Below are positions 30,313 through 41,258 of a stretch of 64,000 nucleotides of DNA, piece by piece. How positions within the stretch are numbered: the first letter of the stretch is position 1; the number at the start of each line of letters is the position of its first letter. This DNA comes from Trichoplax adhaerens (lineage: Eukaryota; Animalia; Placozoa), in the NCBI RefSeq assembly GCF_000150275.1, contig NW_002060949.1, positions 395,861 through 459,860 on the forward strand, read 5' to 3'. The translations under genes and the position numbers were made by a program. The notes under the pieces were generated by a model. The model was not told the origin of the DNA. It worked only from the letters and a program-made list of their open reading frames with translations, and ran no database searches.

Positions 30313-33300
30313 ATGGCTTCCAGCTGGCACCACAGTAAGAATACAGAAATTGGGATTATAGAGGAGTTACCAAAACGAACATTTCGAAAGATTTCTGGCG
30401 ACAGGTCGAGCAATTTTGAAACATCTGGAATTGTTGTTGATTTTAGAAAATTGCTTGTGAGTGAAAGAAGGATCATTGACTCGGTAAGAGAGGATTTGAG
30501 ATCAAACTATCAAAAGACTGGATTTAATGCATCCGTGTATATATATATATATGTCTGCATTTATGCTGCAAATATTGGTAATTGTGACGGCTTGCATGTT
30601 GTTATTGACAGTCAAAAAGCAACGAATTTTATTGTAATGGTAGGAGGTGAAAATTAAAATTATAGTTACAGAGGCAATGAAGAAAATTTGAAGTTGTTAC
30701 TGCCCAATTAATATGCATTAATTGCTAGGGTTTAGTTGGTAGAGAACTCGCTACCGCAGATAAATAAATATAAACTTATTATTGTGCACGTATGCTTTAA
30801 TTAAGTACCGAAGATATACGTTCAACTATGCTGTTAATTTATATTAAAGGAAAATGAATATATTAACTAGCTGCTTGGTGTTATGCTTACTACAGTATAT
30901 ATTATTACATTAATACGTATTTGAACGTGATGGACGTCGAACTTTCACATTTCAATCAATCGGATGGATGTTGACTTTTGGTGCTTGATTTATTATAAAG
31001 GCGTATTAATGATTTCAGATTTCAAATCGGGATCTCTTACATGCCATCGTTGGACTTTACGATATATGCCTGCCGGATGTCACTCCAGAGGTTATATACG
31101 ATTGCGTGTGCGCAAGATTTTCCAAAACGGTTATTCTTTTGCGGGACATAAATGGTAAGAAATGTGATTTAGTAACATTTAATATGTTTAGATATCTATG
31201 TAATAGTATTATTTTTATATGATCAGTGTATTCGTAATTATTCATTGAAGTATTCTATACAAAAATCATTTTGTATAAATTTGGCATTACAAATTATATA
31301 GTAATACCAGTAATACACTGGTGGAATACCGCTAGTAATCGGCAATCGCTTACCGAGATATTGAAAGAAAAGTTATGACGCTTTTGAGGCTAAAGGATAC
31401 TTATATCGTACTTACGCTTTGATTGACATTTCTGTGTTACTTTCGAGTTTAAGTTATATATTATTATTGCATCAAATAGGTATATTAGATACTTCTGCAA
31501 TATTCTGATTCGATACAGTGTCATGCAGTTAGTAATAATAGTTATGACGTTGTGTTCTTTAGAACTTCATGATTTCAATACAGTAGGTGGGGTAGCGAAG
31601 TTGGAGTTTGTAACATTGAAAAATCGGGTAGTCGATTTGGTATTGATTACGAAAGAATTTGATGAATTCTAACTGTTTAAATAATGTTCCGAGCTATAGC
31701 AGTTCGATACGGCTCAGTCGGTTTAACAAAGCCTGTTCTGCTAACTGTAATTAGCATATAGATTACATAAATAATTTTATAATAGCAGATATTATTACTG
31801 ATTCTCTAACGATTAAGATACTACGTAATAGTACAAGCTCTGACAGACAAGAAAAATCTTCTTACAACCACAGATCTCAGAAAAGAGGGACTAAGAACGA
31901 TAATAATAGAATAACGTTGCTGCTTAAATACGTTATTCAACTTGTTTATAATATAAAAGTTATAAACAACGTCTCTAAACACTTACAGAACTTAGCTTGA
32001 GAGCAAAATTCTGTGATTATTGTTATATTCTACGACGCAGAAATCAATATAGTTAAATAATAATTGCTATAAACATTGCTTGTACGGTTTACACCTATTA
32101 TTGTTAACTGTCTAATAAATGCGTCTCACAATAACTCTCTTAGTCAAATGGTATTTTCTAAAAGGCTTTTATTGCAAGGTTTTAGGAATAGTGGAGCAAT
32201 AATTAATTACTACAAGAACCTAGTCCAAATCTAAACTATTCTGAGCTCAAAGCGAAGTGAAGTCTCTTCTCTTCCGTGAGCTCATCTCTGCGGTTATTAT
32301 AAACATTTCGTTAAATCCATTTATGACAAATTGATTAATTTACAATCAGACATGAGTCATCAAACAAAATACTTTTCTCTAATAGTAAGTCATTATTTTC
32401 CACAATCTGAATCATTCTACTTAAGATGTCACTACTCTCCTATTAACGTCTAGGCCCTTTCTCCGCATGGCATCTTAACAACTATAGTTTTTCTAGCCAT
32501 ATAAATCTTGTATCATAATTAGTCAACTGGCTACTATTAGTCATCAACAATTTCTAATATAGTAGTTAGCAATCGTTTAATATTAGCTTCGCGATGATAT
32601 CTATTCAAAGTAACCTAGCTATATCAAATATAGCTATCCGTATAATCGAATATGGGTGCATCACTACACTGTCTTAGATTTTGTGATTATTTTTAAGTTA
32701 TATCTAATTTACTTGTACAGTACATAGTACGTTGACAACAATAGCTTATTTAACAGTATCACTACAGTCGGTTGCAAATGTCTTGGATGATTATCCAGTA
32801 CTTTAAAATTTAGAAGATGCAATCATTATTACGACTGCACAATGAATTTTTTGTATATAGTCTGCGGAGAAGAGTGGGACCTTTGTCTGTATTGGTTAAA
32901 TACTAGTAGATTGGTGTGGGAGACTTTAATTACTTTATTCATTTCATGCATGAATACATGCTGTACGACACTATTTTCTTGTTATATAATTTAAAGTCTC
33001 TATGATAGGTTTATTACGAAATGAGATTATTAGCATGTATAAGTAGCTTCTATAGTATAATCTGATTACAATATTAACTGATTCTGTTGGACTATTGAAC
33101 AATAGTAATACATCTTCACTTAAGTTTAAAATTTATAGTATTTAAGTTTATAGATTAAATATATTCGCCTAAATGTAATCGCGGATATATATTATCACTT
33201 ATAGTGATTCATCGGTCATTATCTTATTTTCGAGAATGCTATCGCGTACCCTAGTTTTTAGAATGTGTTCTTAGCAGCATTAGCTTAGTTCAGTTCAATA

Positions 33301-36300
33301 ACAATAAAGATTTAGTCCAATATTCTAGCTTTATCGGATTCGTCTGAAAATTTCTGGCTAATCTTCCTTGTTACAAAGTAGAAGTATTTCGAAACTGTAA
33401 CAGGATTGCAAAATTCCCATTCTTAGAGCCGTCTCATTTTTTTATACTAGATATCAAAGGATCAATGATAGTAAATGAGCAAAAGGAGCAAAATGACTGT
33501 GATGTGGATGATGGAGGCTCTACCAAGTCTGTTGATCAAGGTGAAATATGTTGTATCTATCTGTAATTGGCATGCATTGTGTTCATAGTGTGCATGGGAA
33601 ATCTCATTTTATGCATTGTGTATAAATAGTTTTGTGTCGCTAGAGGTGGCTATGTAGTAGATATCAAGTTGGTTATCTTACATAATAACTAGTTGCTTTG
33701 CATTCCTTATACCGTATCCAGCAGTTTGTGGAGTTGCAAACCCTGAAACGCCGATAATGAAATTAAGAATATGATAAAACACGCATTTACAGATTAAGAC
33801 TATAGTAAATCCTTACTTGAAAATTCTTTTAAAATTTAGTATTTAGAGGCGAACAGAGAAGTATCTTTACGGGAATTTATAGCGATTCAGAAGAAAGCGT
33901 ATTGGCTTCGTCGGCGGATAGGTCTGTTGATTGGTATTCCTGTATAAAAGAACATCTACATCATCAATTACATATTCGTCAACTTTAGTAGTTAAATGCT
34001 AAATGTCGGAAGAGGCTTCAGCCTAATGGAGATTACGAAAGATTAAATACAATGGATAATCACTTTTCTATATTAAAGCTTAAATCTGTGTGATTATAAT
34101 TCCTTAAGCATTTATTTAAGGATATAAAGCTAGAGTTTGCAAATAAGTCTTAATGATGTGCGTACGCATAATTTTATACATACCGTACAGTGTACGAGTT
34201 CACTTGCGGAAATGATATCAGATATTTTTTGGGCTTATAGCAGTGAAAGCGATAACTCTGAAGAGGAGAATTATAGTGCTGGAATTGATGAGTTTATAGA
34301 GGCCGCCCGTGAACGTCGTAGAATGATTGCGGATTCTACAGGTAGTAATAGATAGGCTTAAATTAGTACCGATAACAGTTGGCTTACCTGAATGAAAAGT
34401 AGGATAATTTAATGATTGTCTGTTAATATTATAAGGATTGGTAGATCTCGTAGTGCGGTAGGCGAGAGATGTGTAGTTTTGTTAGCGATTGATCCTTAGT
34501 ATTAGAGTCGCATTGTAGGCTAATGGCAGCGAGGACAAGCATTTCAGCAGGCTCATAGTAGCTTGGTTTGTCGTTACAAATTTCGATTTACAACAGTGTC
34601 AAATTGGTCCTGTCTTGGTGATTAATTTAATTTGAACTGGTTGTAGGCCTGTACTAATTCTATATAATCAATCTGATTGAAAACATTGATAAATTTGTTG
34701 AGTAGATGTGGATATAAAATGGAATGATTGATTAATTTATGCCATTAGAAATTGATAGACAAGATGTAGGAGTTGTCGGTCTCACTGAAAACTTGACATC
34801 ATATTGTACTTGGTACGACGGATTCTATGTTAATAGGGGGAGAATTGTCTACGAAGTTGATTGGTCCTGAATGCTTGTTAGTAGGATGTGCTACATTTGA
34901 AAGGGCTTACAGGTATGGTAACAATTGAACGATTTGTACTGTGCAATATTGCTTCATAGCTGTTGAGGTAATCTGCTCAAAGCTACTAGTTGATTAATTA
35001 TTGCGGCATACGCGGACAATTTGCACTAACAATTTGTGTATTAAGACATTTATCTGGAGATTATTTATTTGAGAGCACCTAATTTAAAAAACGGAGGCAT
35101 TAGTGATAAAGTAAATCGAAAGTAAGAACCTTATTCATTTCTTTACAGTTTAAATTAATAACATGAAGTCTTGTAATACTGCATGTTTTGTATATTGTAT
35201 TTTTAGGAGTGTAATGCTAATTACGATAGTTACTTTATTTACAGTTGACGGCTTGTGAGAGGGAAATTTCAGTAAAAATCTATAACTTGCAAATGGTTGG
35301 AAGTATCTTATTTAACCATTGGTCTATTGATACGCTAGTTTTACTTATAATTAGCTTGATTTTATATCGCTTCGCTAATAAAAGTATTATATTAAACATT
35401 TCAACTTTTTCGTAATATTTATGACAATAAGCAATGTTTAATGCCATAGTGTGATAAATATGCTCCTGTTATATATATAATTATTATTTACAACAAGTAC
35501 TAATCACGAAACGATTTCGAGTAAAATTGAATTTAATTACTGATTTTGGTTAACCAAATTTCTACAACGGGAAATTATCGTTTCAAGAATAAGTACCATT
35601 CTAACTCTATTGATATAGCTTCTTATATAGCTAGTTTGTTTACGACACCCAAAATAATTGAGAAGAAATAGCTGAATCAATCATTTACCCATTAGACTTA
35701 GCATTAAAATGAATGAATCTCTACGATTACTATAGCTTCCTACGAAACTGAGATTGGTAAACTTATGGTATTGGCAACATGACAATACTTGTACTAGCTG
35801 TCATTAATAATTTATAAATGACTCCAAACTGTTGACGAGGGCATGCATTATGTTATTATACACCGCTCGTGCATGATGTTGTGGATTGCATTTGGTTACG
35901 TGATAATATAATATTTGATAAGATTAAAGTACAAAATAGCCTGCGATTAGTACCGTTCACAGCAACCTGGACCAGTTTAAATTTCAAAATTTTAGCGTAA
36001 ATGCACTTCTCATAGCTTTGCAAGGTAATGCTGTTCTTTGGGTCATGAAACATACTTGAAATTGTTACAAAGGAATGCTAAATTATCAAGCGTGTTAACG
36101 ATGTTATTACCTACGAGCTTAGTTTCATTTTTTAACGTAGACGAGGAAATGAGAGAGTTGGACAGATTAGTTTGCTGGCTGTGAGAAATAGATATAGGCG
36201 ATGCCATATTGGAAAGTATCTGCTTGAGGTAATTTTTATATGCAATTCTTTACGCCAGCATTGTCATGTTATATGCGAGCGAGATGTATATGCAACTTTT

Positions 36301-39300
36301 TTATTGCCTTGAGATCGTTTGTGAAAGAGAGTAAGTATGACCATAATAGAGTGTAGGTCAAGTCAAATGGCTGAATAGAATTAGAAATGTTGCTAGCTAT
36401 ATTTAATTTTTATTCGATTTAAAATTTAAGAGTTACTTGGATGTAAGTTTTATTTAATATCCCAGTTGAACTGTCGATGAAGATGTACATGCGTGATATT
36501 GCAGTAGAGTATTTGCTTACCAATAGAATATTCCAATGAGTTTACGATTAAGATTTCATTTGACTGTCTTGAGGAATTATTATTGCAAAGTAAATTAATT
36601 TTCTATGTTATATGATTATTTTGTGTATTTTTCTTGTAATTTATCGGTGAAATTGTTTTAATTGATAGATAATTATGAATGTGAATATAATGGGGGAATA
36701 CGATGCGATCGCAGCGTACGTAGATGACGGTGCCAAAGATTTCTTTTTAAATAATGGATTCAGCGATGATGTCTTGCTAAACAGCCGGTACAAGTATGTG
36801 CGAATGCAGTGCAGTTTAAGAGATCCATATGTATAATACTTTGAGACGTTTAATTATTTAAGACCTTTAGTATGTAGAATCATCAAGCTCGATATTTTTC
36901 AAACTATACATAATATAATTAATGAATTATTGGCCAACCTCTTTGCTCGTAGTTGTTTAGTTTTTGGAAAAGGTTGCTTTTTACAGGTTTAGGTTTATGA
37001 GTATATGTCCATGAGGCTTTATTTTGAGTGCAGTAGTAACATAATTAATTACTATACTTATATACTGTAAGTGAAGTCTCTTGATCAAGTGGATACAAAA
37101 TTAACTCGGTGTTCAAGTGGTGGTAGTTGTGTTAAAAATTTAATCCTTTTGGAAGTACTGTACTTTATAAAAAATGTACATTGTAGTAAAGTTAGATTTA
37201 TAGATTTCTATTGACATGGACTTCTTTTGAAATTTTGGTTTGTTACCGTCTGTATCACTAAAGGACAGTCAATTTATTGTGATAGCATACTGTACTTTTA
37301 AATTAAATTATTATTATAACTCTTTCTTTACCTTATTAGGAAGTATATCAATCACTGGATTAACAGTACATTGATGTGCTACTTGCCAATGGTTTCAGGT
37401 AGAGGAATAGCTAGATTGACAGTAAACAGCAGTGTAGGCGTAAAAATTTACATTGAACAGCAACATAGGTTTTAAAAATGACATCAATACGAAAGAATTA
37501 ATTACTTTAAAGTAGAACAATGTAACGCATACCCTGTATTGTCGCAACGTTCATTGTAGGTGTTTTACCGTTCGATAACAATTTGTATTTGACTGAACGC
37601 TTTAGCTGTTAATATAAACAACGCCGGTAGTCTTGATGAAATTGTTGAAGAATGTGAAAAATGGTGAGTTAGAAAAAGGATTATAGTATTGATAGAACGT
37701 GTTGATTTAGTGTTGAAATTGTAGTTATAATTCGATGTAATACTGGATATATAAAAAACGGGTATACCGATTTTAGGAGACAGAAAAGTCTCGAGGCTTA
37801 TCAAATGCAAGCTGGCTGCATGTTTAAGATGGTACATGAAAACCATCAGCTTAGGAAAACGGTCGATAAATTGAAGATTCTTTCTCTGTGTTTATTGTAT
37901 ATATAATTCTTGTAATCAAATGCATCATAATAATAATAATAATAATAATAATGTGCCATTTGTCTTGGAAATAACCGTTATGCTATGAAATAGGTAAAAG
38001 AGCAGACTGAGTTGATCAAAGATTTGGAAGATCGCTTAAGTAGAAAACAGCAGCAATTGGAATATATTGGTATTACTTACTATAGACTAGTACTGCATCA
38101 ATATGGAATAGTGGAGCAGGAATTAACTTCAATGTTGTGATTTGAAATGTAGAAAAAGAATTTACTAGGTATCGTCAGAAAGTTGCAGTAGGTAAATGCA
38201 CATGTTTGGTTTGGTAGTTATCATTGCTCGTAATACGTTTTATTTGAATTCGGTTGGATGTGTCAATAGAAAGTTGACATGGTGGTAAGAAATGAAATTT
38301 ATTATGATGTATTTCTGTTGCCAGATTCTAGAGAGTTGTCAAGAATGACTGAAGATGTAGAAAGGCTACATTTGAGTGATAATAGATCACAAAGTATGAC
38401 TGATTAGTTTTGGGTGTTGATGGAAATATTAATATAATAATAGGTAATTATAGAAATTTGTAGCTGTCCATTGAAGTAAGGAAATTTTTTGTTGATATGG
38501 TTTTGCAGATTTTGTTGGGAAGTTTGGTTGTAGAGATGAAATTCTGAAAGAATTACGGTATCCAGTTGAGGAATTTGTAAAGTGTATGGAACAATGTATG
38601 CAATCTGGTAGCAGCGTTGAAGTACAAGAAATCTATCAGGTTAAATATGGATTATTATTTTTCTATTAAACGACGAGATTTCCATCGCCTCTTTTATATA
38701 GAGAATATGTGATTGTTGTTTTCTACTACAGTGGGGCAGGAAATAGACTATAAATGGTAGTTGTTATTATTATTATGATTATTTAGTCCTAGAAGATGTC
38801 AACTGCTAGTATTATTATATTACTATTATTTAAGGATAGCATTGACATAGTAGGGTATGTGCTTGGTTTATAGGTTTCTGAGAATGCTAAATCAAAAATT
38901 CAAAATAATTTTGATTCTTGCGTGAACTCTTTTGGAGATAATGCTTCTGTGCTAACGTTGTATTATTGTGGAGGTAAAAGCGGCTTAAAGGGAATATTAG
39001 AAAATGGTTTTACTACAGAAGGTAAAAGCTATGTAGTAGGACACGATAAGACAATCGTGCATACCGTTAGTGTAGTTAGCTTAAGGTAATAATTGATGCT
39101 GTGCTTTTGAAACAATTAGGTTGTCCAGTACGGTACAATAGAGAATTATGAGCTAACTTAGTTAGTCCTAGTTGATGTCATTGCTACCCAATTGTATTTT
39201 ATTTATTTACTTACAATACTGTAATCAAAGATTGTCAACGTGTAGCAATATGATTAACTGATTTTATTATGGAGTATTTATTGATGGATATAATCAGTTG

Positions 39301-40551
39301 TACTTGATACAAATGCGGTAGTGCAGTACTGGAGAGTATGATCGTAGTAGTAGTTTATTATGATTTCATTTGGAGTGCAATATTCGTTTAGGTGAGGGAT
39401 AAGGAATAGCGTAAAAAGTGGGATATTGACAGGGTGATTTCTACTTGTAGTAGTGTGTATTTTTAGAGTATTGATGATGATAATATGATAATAATTATAA
39501 TAATTTATTGCTGTGATTCATTCATTCATTCAATTATTGTTATGGACGTATGATAAAAATACGAACGTGAAAGAATTTGTAAGAGATATTTTTGGGCAAG
39601 GGTTGTATTTTTCAAAATACGCAACACAAGCGATTTATTTCAGCAAGGTAATGAAGTCAATGTACTGTACTTTTTGTTTATTTATGATGTGGAAGTGTTG
39701 CAGTAGGTAGGTTTGTAATGGATAAGTAGGAAAGTTAACGTCAGTATAAATTACGTAAGATATAGTAATAATAATATAGGAGTAGTAGTACAGTACAGTA
39801 GAGAAATGATAATGCTGTCTATCATTGTTATGATGATTAGTGAAACGTATACAGTCGATGTACTGTACAGTATTTCATAATATGCATAATAGAGCAATAA
39901 AGAGAATAATTTATGTTGCGAATTTTTATTGTAGCCAGATGAGGTTTTGATTGCAAGAGTGGCTCTTGGTCGAGTAGAGTCGGTTGTGAGAAGTGATGAA
40001 AACTGGTACAATTGTGCTTGTGTTTTTGTAGCATTCTATGTTGATTGATGATTGTGTTTGTTCATTCGATGTTGTATCTTTGCTTGTATTAGTTGCACAC
40101 CACCGGAAGGTTTTGATTCTATCTTGGTAAGGAGGAGCTAGTGTGTATGATTATAGTTCATTAGTGATGTTAAGTTTCGTGTGTTTTGTGTTGGTATGGG
40201 TAGAAAATATATTTATTTATGAATTAAGAAAGTACTAATATAGACTTTGCTGTATTGCTAGTGATAATTGATGTTATGGCTTGTGTATGTGTCAATGATG
40301 TGAATTGATATTTTATGGCAGACTAAAGGAAGACATTCTATAACTTATCAAAGAGATCCACTGTATAAGCATGAATATATTCTATTTCGTCCTGAGCAGG
40401 TACTATCATACTCAATCACATCAAGGTAGTCGATTGCGTAGATACTGTATAATGAAAGGAGATTCACTAAGTAAGTTGATTGGAATTTGGTCTATAGGCG
40501 ATGCCTATCTGTGCTGTGAAGTACGTGATTAAAACAAGAAGCGGCCCTTAG
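30313..40551 (+). CDS. GCN5-like GNAT acetyltransferase + coiled coil + PARP-like ADP-ribosyltransferase domain fusion (~20 exons)
   Basis: Phase-consistent exons from 31019 to the stop at 40549-40551. GNAT part: LLHAIVGLYDICLPDVTPEVIYDCVCARFSKTVILLRD, an acidic insert, LLVGCATFER, VGQISLLAVRNRYRRCHIGKYLLE, AIAAYVDDGAKDFFLNNGFSDD, YINHWINSTLMCYLP. Coiled coil: VKEQTELIKDLEDRLSRKQQQLEYIEKEF. PARP-like part: LTLYYCGG...ILENGF, FGQGLYFSKYATQAIYFS, VLIARVALG, PPEGFDSI, HEYILFRPEQAMPICAVKY. The 5' exon structure (30313-30638) is uncertain. Confidence 0.8.
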
Positions 40552-41258
40552 AGTATGCTACTACACTAGCTGAACATGGTAGAAAGATTTGGAAAAGAGA
40601 GATTTTCGATTTAGTGAAGATTGGGAAATTAGTATGTGTATGTCTAGTTTTATGCTATTGAAATTATAGTGTCAATTGTCCTTACTGATAGGTGATTAAT
40701 ATCGTTGGAGGTAGATATTACGGTTAGTGTGACTTGTCGCGCATCACGATTTTGGAGAATTTAAAAGTGTCAATTAATAAATTAACGAAATCAACAGAAT
40801 CCTGTACAGTGGAGTTGTTATGAAGTAAGAGTACTAAGTGTGAAATATGTATTTTTTGTATTAAGCATACGTACCGCTGCCATGTGTAGAAATATGTAGT
40901 GGAAAAAATCAGTATGGGTAAAATGTGGTAGCGAGGTGAAATTGATATACAGTACTGTATTGTAGGATTATAAGGGGAAGGGAACTGTAGAGTGAATCCC
41001 TCCTGTAGATATTAACTTTATAATCTTCTTACCTATGGAAAATTTGGTAATTTGCGATACTCTGGAAACGTAATTGTTACTTTTTAATTAGTGCACAGTA
41101 TGGTTCTATTTTATAAGTATCGGATACTTTTTGAGTACTGCAAAGCGGATATAATGTACAGTAGGTCTTTTCTTTTTGAAAGCACATGGCAGCCGCCGCG
41201 TGTTGCGTGTTTTTTACGCGTCGTCAACGCATGTTTTCATAAGCAATACTGCTTTGAA

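Follow-up and report, generated by a model that had tools for sequence, protein, structure and literature searches.

Does a single gene of the placozoan Trichoplax adhaerens encode an acetyltransferase-like and an ADP-ribosyltransferase-like domain in one polypeptide chain, and if so, what could such a protein do? The question is raised by a locus in a stretch of 64,000 nucleotides of contig NW_002060949.1 (assembly GCF_000150275.1, positions 395,861 to 459,860 of the forward strand). This stretch is called the window below, and all gene positions refer to it. A first-pass annotation of the letters had proposed that spliced exons at 30313-40551 join a GNAT domain, a heptad-rich helix and a PARP-type catalytic domain. 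Splicing in silico yielded a gene of 21 exons on the + strand with AG/GT boundaries throughout and an open frame of 614 amino acids (aa), from the ATG at 30313 to the TAG at 40549-40551. The DNA of the locus is AT-rich (about 32% GC) and the introns are short. This is one real, expressed gene with a GNAT-coiled coil-PARP architecture; we have hardly any doubt about it. Its product is a putative dimeric enzyme or sensor that would bind acetyl-coenzyme A (acetyl-CoA) and nicotinamide adenine dinucleotide (NAD+). To this reading we assign a rough probability of 0.6.

Transcription of the locus was followed in Logan contigs from four sequencing runs of four studies, which were aligned to positions 35000-40900. 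Run X11 is a declared RNA library. Between 36229 and 40497, each intron is bridged by joints with GT..AG ends in RNA contigs of the runs X4, X7 and X11 (three studies). Run X5 exhibited a flat low depth and zero joints; it behaves as DNA and was used as control. An 880-nucleotide (nt) contig (X7 record 25, X11 record 3) comprises ten exons; it begins with exon 36141-36228, which encodes GNAT motif A, and ends with exon 38874-39021, the first one of the PARP domain. The following joints 39021>39574, 39647>39935, 40005>40093, 40126>40322 and 40399>40498 were each present in contigs of all three RNA runs. In the upstream direction, RNA contigs of X4, X7 and X11 carry a 28-base loose end ahead of 36141, which is the exact 3' end of exon 34837-34912. 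The 3' untranslated region reaches at least 40765 (RNA contigs, three runs), and an AATAAA lies at about 40776. The first-pass annotation had asked whether the exons at 36141 and 39934 share one transcript. They do so by way of a chain of overlapping spliced contigs, none of which covers all of it alone.

This result bears on the trivial explanation that neighbouring GNAT and PARP genes were merged into one open reading frame by gene modelling. Neither public Trichoplax model contains the whole architecture, the H2 model P0003 (see below) carries no precomputed Pfam domain, and the entire mRNA is spanned by no single read or contig. Upstream of 35000 the model rests on P0003, on the conservation of orthologues and on profile matches to exons 2, 5 and 6. 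However, GNAT motif A is joined to the first PARP exon in the 880-nt spliced contig of two runs, all later junctions were seen in three runs within one open frame, and independent gene models from more than ten phyla have both domains in one protein. A merged gene model is thus close to being refuted.

Two database proteins represent parts of the gene. P0001 (454 aa) is recorded as "expressed hypothetical protein" of Trichoplax adhaerens. It starts inside the intron ahead of exon 5 and lacks the first four exons. P0003, a protein of Trichoplax sp. H2, is identical to the 614-aa model over exons 1-2 and then has three further exons; exons 1-6 of our model agree with it. P0003 does not use the donor at 39021 and terminates within intron 16, probably because unspliced RNA covers that intron. 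Both proteins use a shorter exon 11 without VHENHQLRKT (aa 348-357), and the longer form is backed by RNA joints and orthologues. The model of 21 exons and 614 aa is the best one because exons 3-5 of P0003 map in phase, their motifs are conserved and exon 5 matches the family profile. A model of 523 aa, produced by direct splicing of 31154 to 34837, was rejected as the main form although it is in frame: the acidic insert encoded by the skipped exons is present in the H2 model and in all orthologues, and exon 5 has its profile match. An isoform skipping exons 3-5 may exist beside the 614-aa form. For the annotation this means that the whole protein, shown by neither public Trichoplax model, is now supplied by the RNA-supported 21-exon model.

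The peptides quoted in the first-pass annotation all lie in frame on the + strand, each within an exon: IVGLYDICLPDVTPEVI...SKTVILLRD (31019-31154), AYVDDGAKDFFLNNGFS (36669-36793) and YINHWINSTLM (37340-37398) on the GNAT side, and FGQGLYFS (39574-39647), VLIARVALG (39935-40005) and PPEGFDSI (40093-40126) on the PARP side. The peptide HEYILFRPEQ, continued by AMP, crosses the 40399/40498 junction.

The RNA contigs revealed some further features of the introns. Intron 16 contains a joint of 78 nt with TA..AG ends (39248-39327), which all three RNA runs show at lower depth. Either the retained intron is spliced non-canonically there, or the joint reflects an indel polymorphism relative to the reference. 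Intronic indel polymorphisms among the runs include a TACAG insertion behind 35475 (X4, X7) and a 5-nt deletion at 39859 (X5, X7). Unspliced RNA contigs also extend over introns 6, 16 and 17 (35000-36168, 38992-39227, 39327-39600 and 39618-39962) at about one fifth of the exon depth or less, and one unspliced RNA contig crosses the 36141 acceptor. Such intronic contigs could represent pre-mRNA or intron retention.

The domains were analyzed by Pfam, by profile searches of the PDB and by fold searches, with single exons or the database proteins P0001/P0003 and their homologues as queries. Exon by exon, Pfam gave only sub-threshold matches (GNAT, E 0.006, for exon 36141-36228; PARP, E 0.09, for exon 39574-39647). 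Single exons retrieved nothing meaningful from the PDB, since they are too short. With P0001, in which the N-terminal half is missing, Pfam reported GNAT families at the borderline; Acetyltransf_10 was matched by 30 of the 37 family members, with a best E of 1e-11. A profile of these 37 members was then compared with all PDB sequences. Among the GNAT proteins it ranked Tetrahymena GCN5 (3e-7), human KAT2A (2e-6), PCAF (1.5e-5) and yeast Gcn5 (3e-4) first, followed by GNA1 (1e-3) and Naa30 (5e-3). In bits, GCN5, KAT2A and PCAF reached 32-27 versus 20.7 for the next GNAT. The GNAT-only protein of Styela, used alone against the PDB, did not recover GCN5; the family profile does.

The predicted structures agree with this ranking. 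The AlphaFold model of P0003 has a predicted local distance difference test (pLDDT) score of 82-94 over both GNAT halves, and Foldseek placed HAT1, Tetrahymena GCN5 (template modelling (TM) score 0.67) and the histone acetyltransferase (HAT) module of SAGA first. In VIA-align, PCAF and GCN5 filled all top ten places (Z 13.2-12.7; root mean square deviation 1.9-2.6 Å over 129-139 residues); however, their structural lead over NatD (Z 12.7) and AAC(2') (12.4) is less than one Z unit. The true GCN5/KAT2 gene of T. adhaerens was found through its PCAF_N domain on another contig (G000:C1412:9557234-9561100, + strand, loci L012-L015, PCAF_N exons followed by HAT exons) and served as comparison sequence. 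A local alignment to its HAT core scored 71 versus 30 ± 5 for shuffled sequences (z = 8.2), spans nearly the whole GNAT domain and ends at a common TLM motif. By profile bits, by the VIA-align top ten and by this pairwise score, the GNAT part indeed follows GCN5/PCAF in particular, as first claimed.

In the alignment to Trichoplax GCN5, Q227 stands opposite the Glu of 'FSEIVFCAV', and R238-R-C-H241-I-G243 stands opposite QVKGYG. The Glu in question is the general base on beta-4, corresponding to E173 of yeast Gcn5. At this position the 37 family members have His (19), Gln (14) or Lys (3), and never Glu. Motif A, the acetyl-CoA pyrophosphate loop (consensus Q/R-x-x-G-x-G/A), reads R-x-x-G-x-G in most of the family: Arg and the second Gly are present in 37/37 members and the first Gly in 31/37, whereas the Trichoplax protein has H241 in place of the first Gly. 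The GNAT fold is split by an insert of about 90 aa, which is acidic and serine-rich and ends in a conserved helix. Two motifs of the insert, F..VFSD[ST]E and EEDFS.G...F...V..RR, are shared with orthologues from other phyla. At the C-terminal end of the domain, in the segment encoded by exon 9, residues N, T, M and P hardly vary across the family.

Between the GNAT and PARP domains the AlphaFold model shows one uninterrupted helix of 83 residues. Within aa 318-418 (101 residues) there is a single Gly and no Pro. Heptad counting gave one register for aa 339-415, in which 62-88% of the a/d positions are hydrophobic. The motif W..KSLEAYQ.Q at the start of the helix is nearly invariant in the family. 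The heptad-rich helix of the first-pass annotation is thus real; it comprises about 100 residues in a stable register.

PF00644 matched P0001 with 39.3 bits (cut-off 26.7, E 6.6e-10) and 35 of the 37 family members. Against the PDB, the family profile retrieved PARP4 (1.6e-9), tankyrases (1e-7) and ZAP (2e-5), and also PARP3 and PARP10. The AlphaFold pLDDT is 83-96 over the PARP domain. Foldseek matched PARP4, tankyrase, PARP3 and PARP1 at E about 1e-10 with probability 1.0 and TM scores up to 0.68 (tankyrase). In a hidden Markov model (HMM) alignment to tankyrase-1, LYYCG falls on MLFHG, GLYFS on GIYFA and QEYVIF on AEYVIY. Based on this alignment, the H-Y-E triad reads C494-Y523-E589. In the family Cys is found in 37/37, Tyr in 35/36 and Glu in 35/35 members, and the Gly after the triad Cys (G495) is kept in 36/37. 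An ungapped guess had replaced the PARP His by Tyr. It was rejected, as the HMM alignment to tankyrase-1 puts the His on Cys and keeps the next Gly. Human PARP triads are H-Y-E, H-Y-[ILYTV], Q-Y-T and Y-Y-V. The C-Y-E pocket is thus conserved in the family, yet to our knowledge it differs from that of every characterised PARP.

One further match was observed for the exon with 'LYYCGG...GILENGF'. Locus L002 on the same contig (G000:C1408:3590644-3590718, + strand) resembles it weakly (E 1.1, 52% identity over 25 residues), perhaps as part of another PARP gene, perhaps by chance.

The gene belongs to an ancient, conserved, uncharacterised animal family. In T. adhaerens it is single-copy: in the genome (105.6 Mb, 1414 contigs) all matches of the family profile fall within the locus 30313-40551, the best one to exon 2 (E 3.2e-18). 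Orthologues built from the same three parts, 577-746 aa long, were found in scleractinian corals, many molluscs, Lingula, a sea star, a sea urchin and two hemichordates and, among chordates, in the tunicate Clavelina, three cartilaginous fishes, the coelacanth and five amphibians. All of them run under automatic names, "uncharacterized", and some UniRef entries are called 'glucosamine-phosphate N-acetyltransferase'. Atlas clusters indicate Rotifera and Chordata, where Rotifera is a lead only. A search of exon 16 against 1.84 billion representative proteins returned only P0001, the protein of the locus itself, and one spurious bacterial leucine-rich repeat protein; a profile search of a 5.8-billion-protein set gave one additional Mya model among the matches listed. 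Identity among the non-placozoan members is 55-58% in the GNAT halves, 46% in the PARP domain, 41% in the coiled coil and 24-33% in insert and linker. Together with the RNA joints, Pfam on P0001 and the profile and fold searches, the orthologues in many phyla establish that the three parts reside on one protein, as first proposed.

The proteins of paddlefish, gar, bowfin and salmon (si:dkeyp-50b9.1; P0049, P0050, P0052 and P0055) and a Styela clava model (P0045) end after the coiled coil and show no PARP motifs. This suggests a lineage-specific loss of the C-terminal PARP domain in ray-finned fishes and Styela clava. In P0056 from Acipenser (1012 aa, named tyrosine aminotransferase), GNAT and coiled coil form the C-terminal end; this protein appears to stem from a merged gene model. 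The word-seeded searches listed no amniote (including mammalian), arthropod (including insect) or nematode member among their matches, which does not demonstrate absence.

The first-pass annotation had also stated that no characterised animal PARP family or GCN5 is known to possess this architecture. This statement stands in one respect: literature searches found no paper describing a GNAT-PARP family, apart from the mention of a zebrafish gene name. In another respect it has to be qualified: the family is already present in public databases as 'uncharacterized protein' with both Pfam domains marked. Surveys of PARP evolution which included Trichoplax, Nematostella and Lottia mention no acetyltransferase-linked PARP (PMC2964712, PMC4245714). 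Their silence may be due to the choice of organisms, since the family is apparently absent from the model organisms on which the PARP catalogues were based and zebrafish-type fishes keep the GNAT half only. In a list of genes with strong up-regulation in testis, zebrafish si:dkeyp-50b9.1 stands beside sycp3, dmc1 and hormad1 (bioRxiv 10.1101/650218). This listing is a possible lead to a germline role of the fish GNAT and coiled-coil part and is no evidence about Trichoplax.

What could the protein do? In the mechanism that we propose for the dimeric enzyme or sensor, the coiled coil would form a parallel dimer. The GNAT domain would retain acetyl-CoA binding, with His or Gln standing in for the general-base Glu of GCN5. 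Binding of acetyl-CoA is likely, as judged by the family-wide conservation of R-x-x-G-x-G in motif A, of which the Trichoplax protein has a variant with His at the first Gly; catalysis by this domain is predicted at slightly less than even odds. The altered pocket of the PARP domain, which keeps the catalytic Tyr and Glu and the nicotinamide-site Gly, would accommodate NAD+ or a related ligand. We slightly favor NAD+ binding; an active transferase is somewhat less likely than not. The domain may act as a mono-ADP-ribosyltransferase, possibly on the protein itself, or as a sensor of NAD+ or ADP-ribose that controls the acetyltransferase. Basic proteins such as histones might be the substrates, as judged by the acidic insert, the basic patch following it and the GCN5 ancestry.

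Several observations weigh against an enzyme or sensor of this kind. The general-base Glu of GCN5 is replaced (Q227 in Trichoplax), and motif A of the Trichoplax protein has H241 at the first Gly. In the PARP domain the catalytic His of H-Y-E is replaced by Cys, the Ser of the nicotinamide site by A531 (Ala in 35/37 members) and the stacking Tyr by F534 (Phe in 35/37); these last two positions correspond to S904 and Y907 of PARP1. Cys for His and Ala for Ser cost two hydrogen-bond partners of NAD+ known in PARP1 and tankyrase, so the affinity for NAD+ may be low. The absence of Glu, His and Ser speaks against canonical kinetics. Furthermore, GNAT and PARP are not strictly interdependent, since ray-finned fishes and one tunicate model do without the PARP domain. 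For the choice of substrate, only ancestry and the charge of the insert suggest chromatin.

These substitutions could also mean that catalysis has been lost in both folds. The protein would then serve as a dimeric scaffold or reader without transferase activity. It might bind CoA or ligands derived from NAD, or recognise partners that carry acetyl or ADP-ribosyl groups. We regard this as rather unlikely. It would account for a general-base position that is H, Q or K and never Glu, for a PARP His that is always Cys beside a nicotinamide-site Ser replaced by Ala, and for the R-x-x-H-x-G of Trichoplax; moreover, inactive PARP-fold proteins are known, and PARP13/ZAP is among the profile matches. 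However, the PARP Glu, Tyr and Gly as well as Arg and the second Gly of motif A stay unchanged across more than ten phyla, which is unusual for dead sites, and such constancy of the PARP residues and of motif A speaks against mere decay. The PARPs known to be inactive no longer have the Glu, many active GNATs do without Glu at the general-base position, and the His found there in 19/37 members could act as base.

Alternatively, the GNAT domain might acetylate a metabolite rather than a protein. Amino sugars, polyamines and ADP-ribose derivatives produced by the PARP-like domain would be examples. The rank of GNA1 as next-best GNAT by profile (E 1e-3), the aminoglycoside and polyamine acetyltransferases among the fold matches and the glucosamine-phosphate names in UniRef would fit such an activity. 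In contrast, the profile clearly favors the GCN5 family (32 versus 20.7 bits), and the GCN5-specific C-terminal TLM segment and the helices of the peptide cleft align; automatic names are no evidence of function. A small-molecule enzyme is very improbable.

We thus retain the dimeric enzyme or sensor of acetyl-CoA and NAD+. PARPs, which use NAD+, and GCN5-type acetyltransferases, which use acetyl-CoA, are among the best-studied protein modifiers, and their cofactors are central to metabolism and feed chromatin regulation. A chain that unites the two folds and has persisted from placozoans to amphibians would connect NAD+ and acetyl-CoA chemistry in an obvious way. With its invariant C-Y-E triad, the family departs from the H-Y-E rule in a clear-cut manner that experiments can address. 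More boldly, the family could be an unrecognised catalytic PARP class, ancestral to animals, whose C-Y-E chemistry or ligand differs from that of H-Y-E enzymes and which is coupled to a GCN5-derived acetyltransferase in a dimer that reads or uses acetyl-CoA and NAD+. We consider such a class improbable. If it exists, the same substrate might for example be acetylated and then ADP-ribosylated, or a cysteine-linked auto-ADP-ribosylation might gate the acetyltransferase. The exons of the gene and the features encoded by them are listed in Table 1.

Table 1. Exons of the GNAT-coiled coil-PARP gene of T. adhaerens, with positions in the window.
Exon (aa)	Feature	Position	Strand	Evidence
1 (1-57)	Start codon and N-terminal strands ahead of GNAT core	30313..30483	+	GT donor; identical to P0003 residues 1-57
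2 (58-103)	N-terminal half of GNAT fold, LLHAIVGLYDICLPDVTPEVIY...KTVILLRD	31019..31154	+	AG/GT, phase 0 in, phase 1 out; aligns to GCN5
3 (103-133)	Acidic insert begins inside GNAT domain	33451..33540	+	Matches P0003; AG/GT in phase
4 (133-160)	Insert with acidic serine-rich motif 'F..[VI][FY]SDSE'	33840..33921	+	Matches P0003; motif kept in orthologues of other phyla; AG/GT in phase
5 (160-194)	Acidic run of insert and conserved helix 'NYSAGIDEFIEAARERRR'	34241..34341	+	Family profile E 4.3e-5; in P0001 and P0003; helix pLDDT 87-89
6 (194-219)	GNAT beta-strand LIGPECLLVGCATFERAY	34837..34912	+	Last 28 bases in RNA contigs; profile E 0.026
7 (219-248)	GNAT beta-4, Q227 (codon 36163-36165), motif A R238-R-C-H241-I-G243	36141..36228	+	Joint 36228>36669 in 3 runs; aligns to Trichoplax GCN5
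8 (249-290)	GNAT motif B region AYVDDGAKDFFLNNGFS	36669..36793	+	RNA joints both sides; profile E 6.2e-14
9 (290-310)	GCN5-type C-terminal segment KYINHWINSTLMCYLP	37340..37398	+	RNA joints; aligns to GCN5 'FIKDYEGATLM'
10 (310-329)	Linker, long helix begins	37606..37663	+	Joints 37398>37606 (X7, X11), 37663>37777 (3 runs)
11 (329-357)	'W..KSLEAYQ.Q' motif and coiled coil	37777..37861	+	Joint 37861>37994 in 3 runs
12 (358-383)	Coiled coil	37994..38069	+	RNA joints; heptad register
13 (383-396)	Coiled coil	38153..38191	+	RNA joints
14 (396-419)	Coiled-coil end and variable linker	38325..38393	+	RNA joints
15 (419-462)	Helix and first strand entering PARP domain	38509..38639	+	RNA joints; P0001 model H268-288, E294-302
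16 (463-512)	PARP 'LYYCGG' strand, C494 (codon 38967-38969), G495	38874..39021	+	Ends 880-nt RNA contig; 100% match to P0001; aligned to tankyrase-1 'MLFHGS'
17 (512-536)	PARP 'GQGLYFS', Y523 (codon 39606-39608), A531, F534	39574..39647	+	Joints 39021>39574, 39647>39935 in 3 runs; tankyrase-1 alignment
18 (537-560)	PARP strands VLIARVALGRVE	39935..40005	+	RNA joints; aligns to PARP4 'LLICDVALGK'
19 (560-571)	PARP 'PPEGFDSI'	40093..40126	+	RNA joints; aligns to PARP4 'PPGYDSV'
20 (572-597)	PARP 'HEYILF', catalytic-type Glu E589 (codon 40373-40375)	40322..40399	+	RNA joints; aligns to 'DEFVVY' (PARP4), 'AEYVIY' (tankyrase-1)
21, coding part (598-614)	C-terminal end; stop TAG 40549-40551	40498..40551	+	Joint 40399>40498 in 3 runs

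In comparison with known systems, the GNAT half is closest to GCN5/PCAF (KAT2A/KAT2B). The fold, the helices of the peptide cleft, the position of motif A, motif B and the C-terminal '[AS]TLM' all align with Trichoplax GCN5. However, the fusion gene is not the KAT2 orthologue, which sits elsewhere in the genome together with PCAF_N, and Pfam scans of P0001 and the 37 family members found no PCAF_N or bromodomain. The fusion family also differs by Gln, His or Lys in place of the catalytic Glu, by the acidic insert of about 90 aa and by the attached coiled coil and PARP domain.

The C-terminal half resembles the H-Y-E PARPs (PARP4, tankyrase-1/2, PARP3 and PARP1) in PF00644, in its fold, in the GxGxYF and GFDS motifs and in the catalytic-type Glu. 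In contrast to these enzymes it has C-Y-E, Ala for Ser and Phe for Tyr, and none of their ankyrin/SAM, BRCT, WGR, macro or WWE domains was found in Pfam scans of fusion-family members. A PARP fold with a first triad residue other than His is shared with the catalytically inactive PARP13/ZAP and PARP9. ZAP (Y-Y-V) and PARP9 (Q-Y-T) have lost the Glu too, whereas the fusion family keeps Glu, Tyr and Gly.

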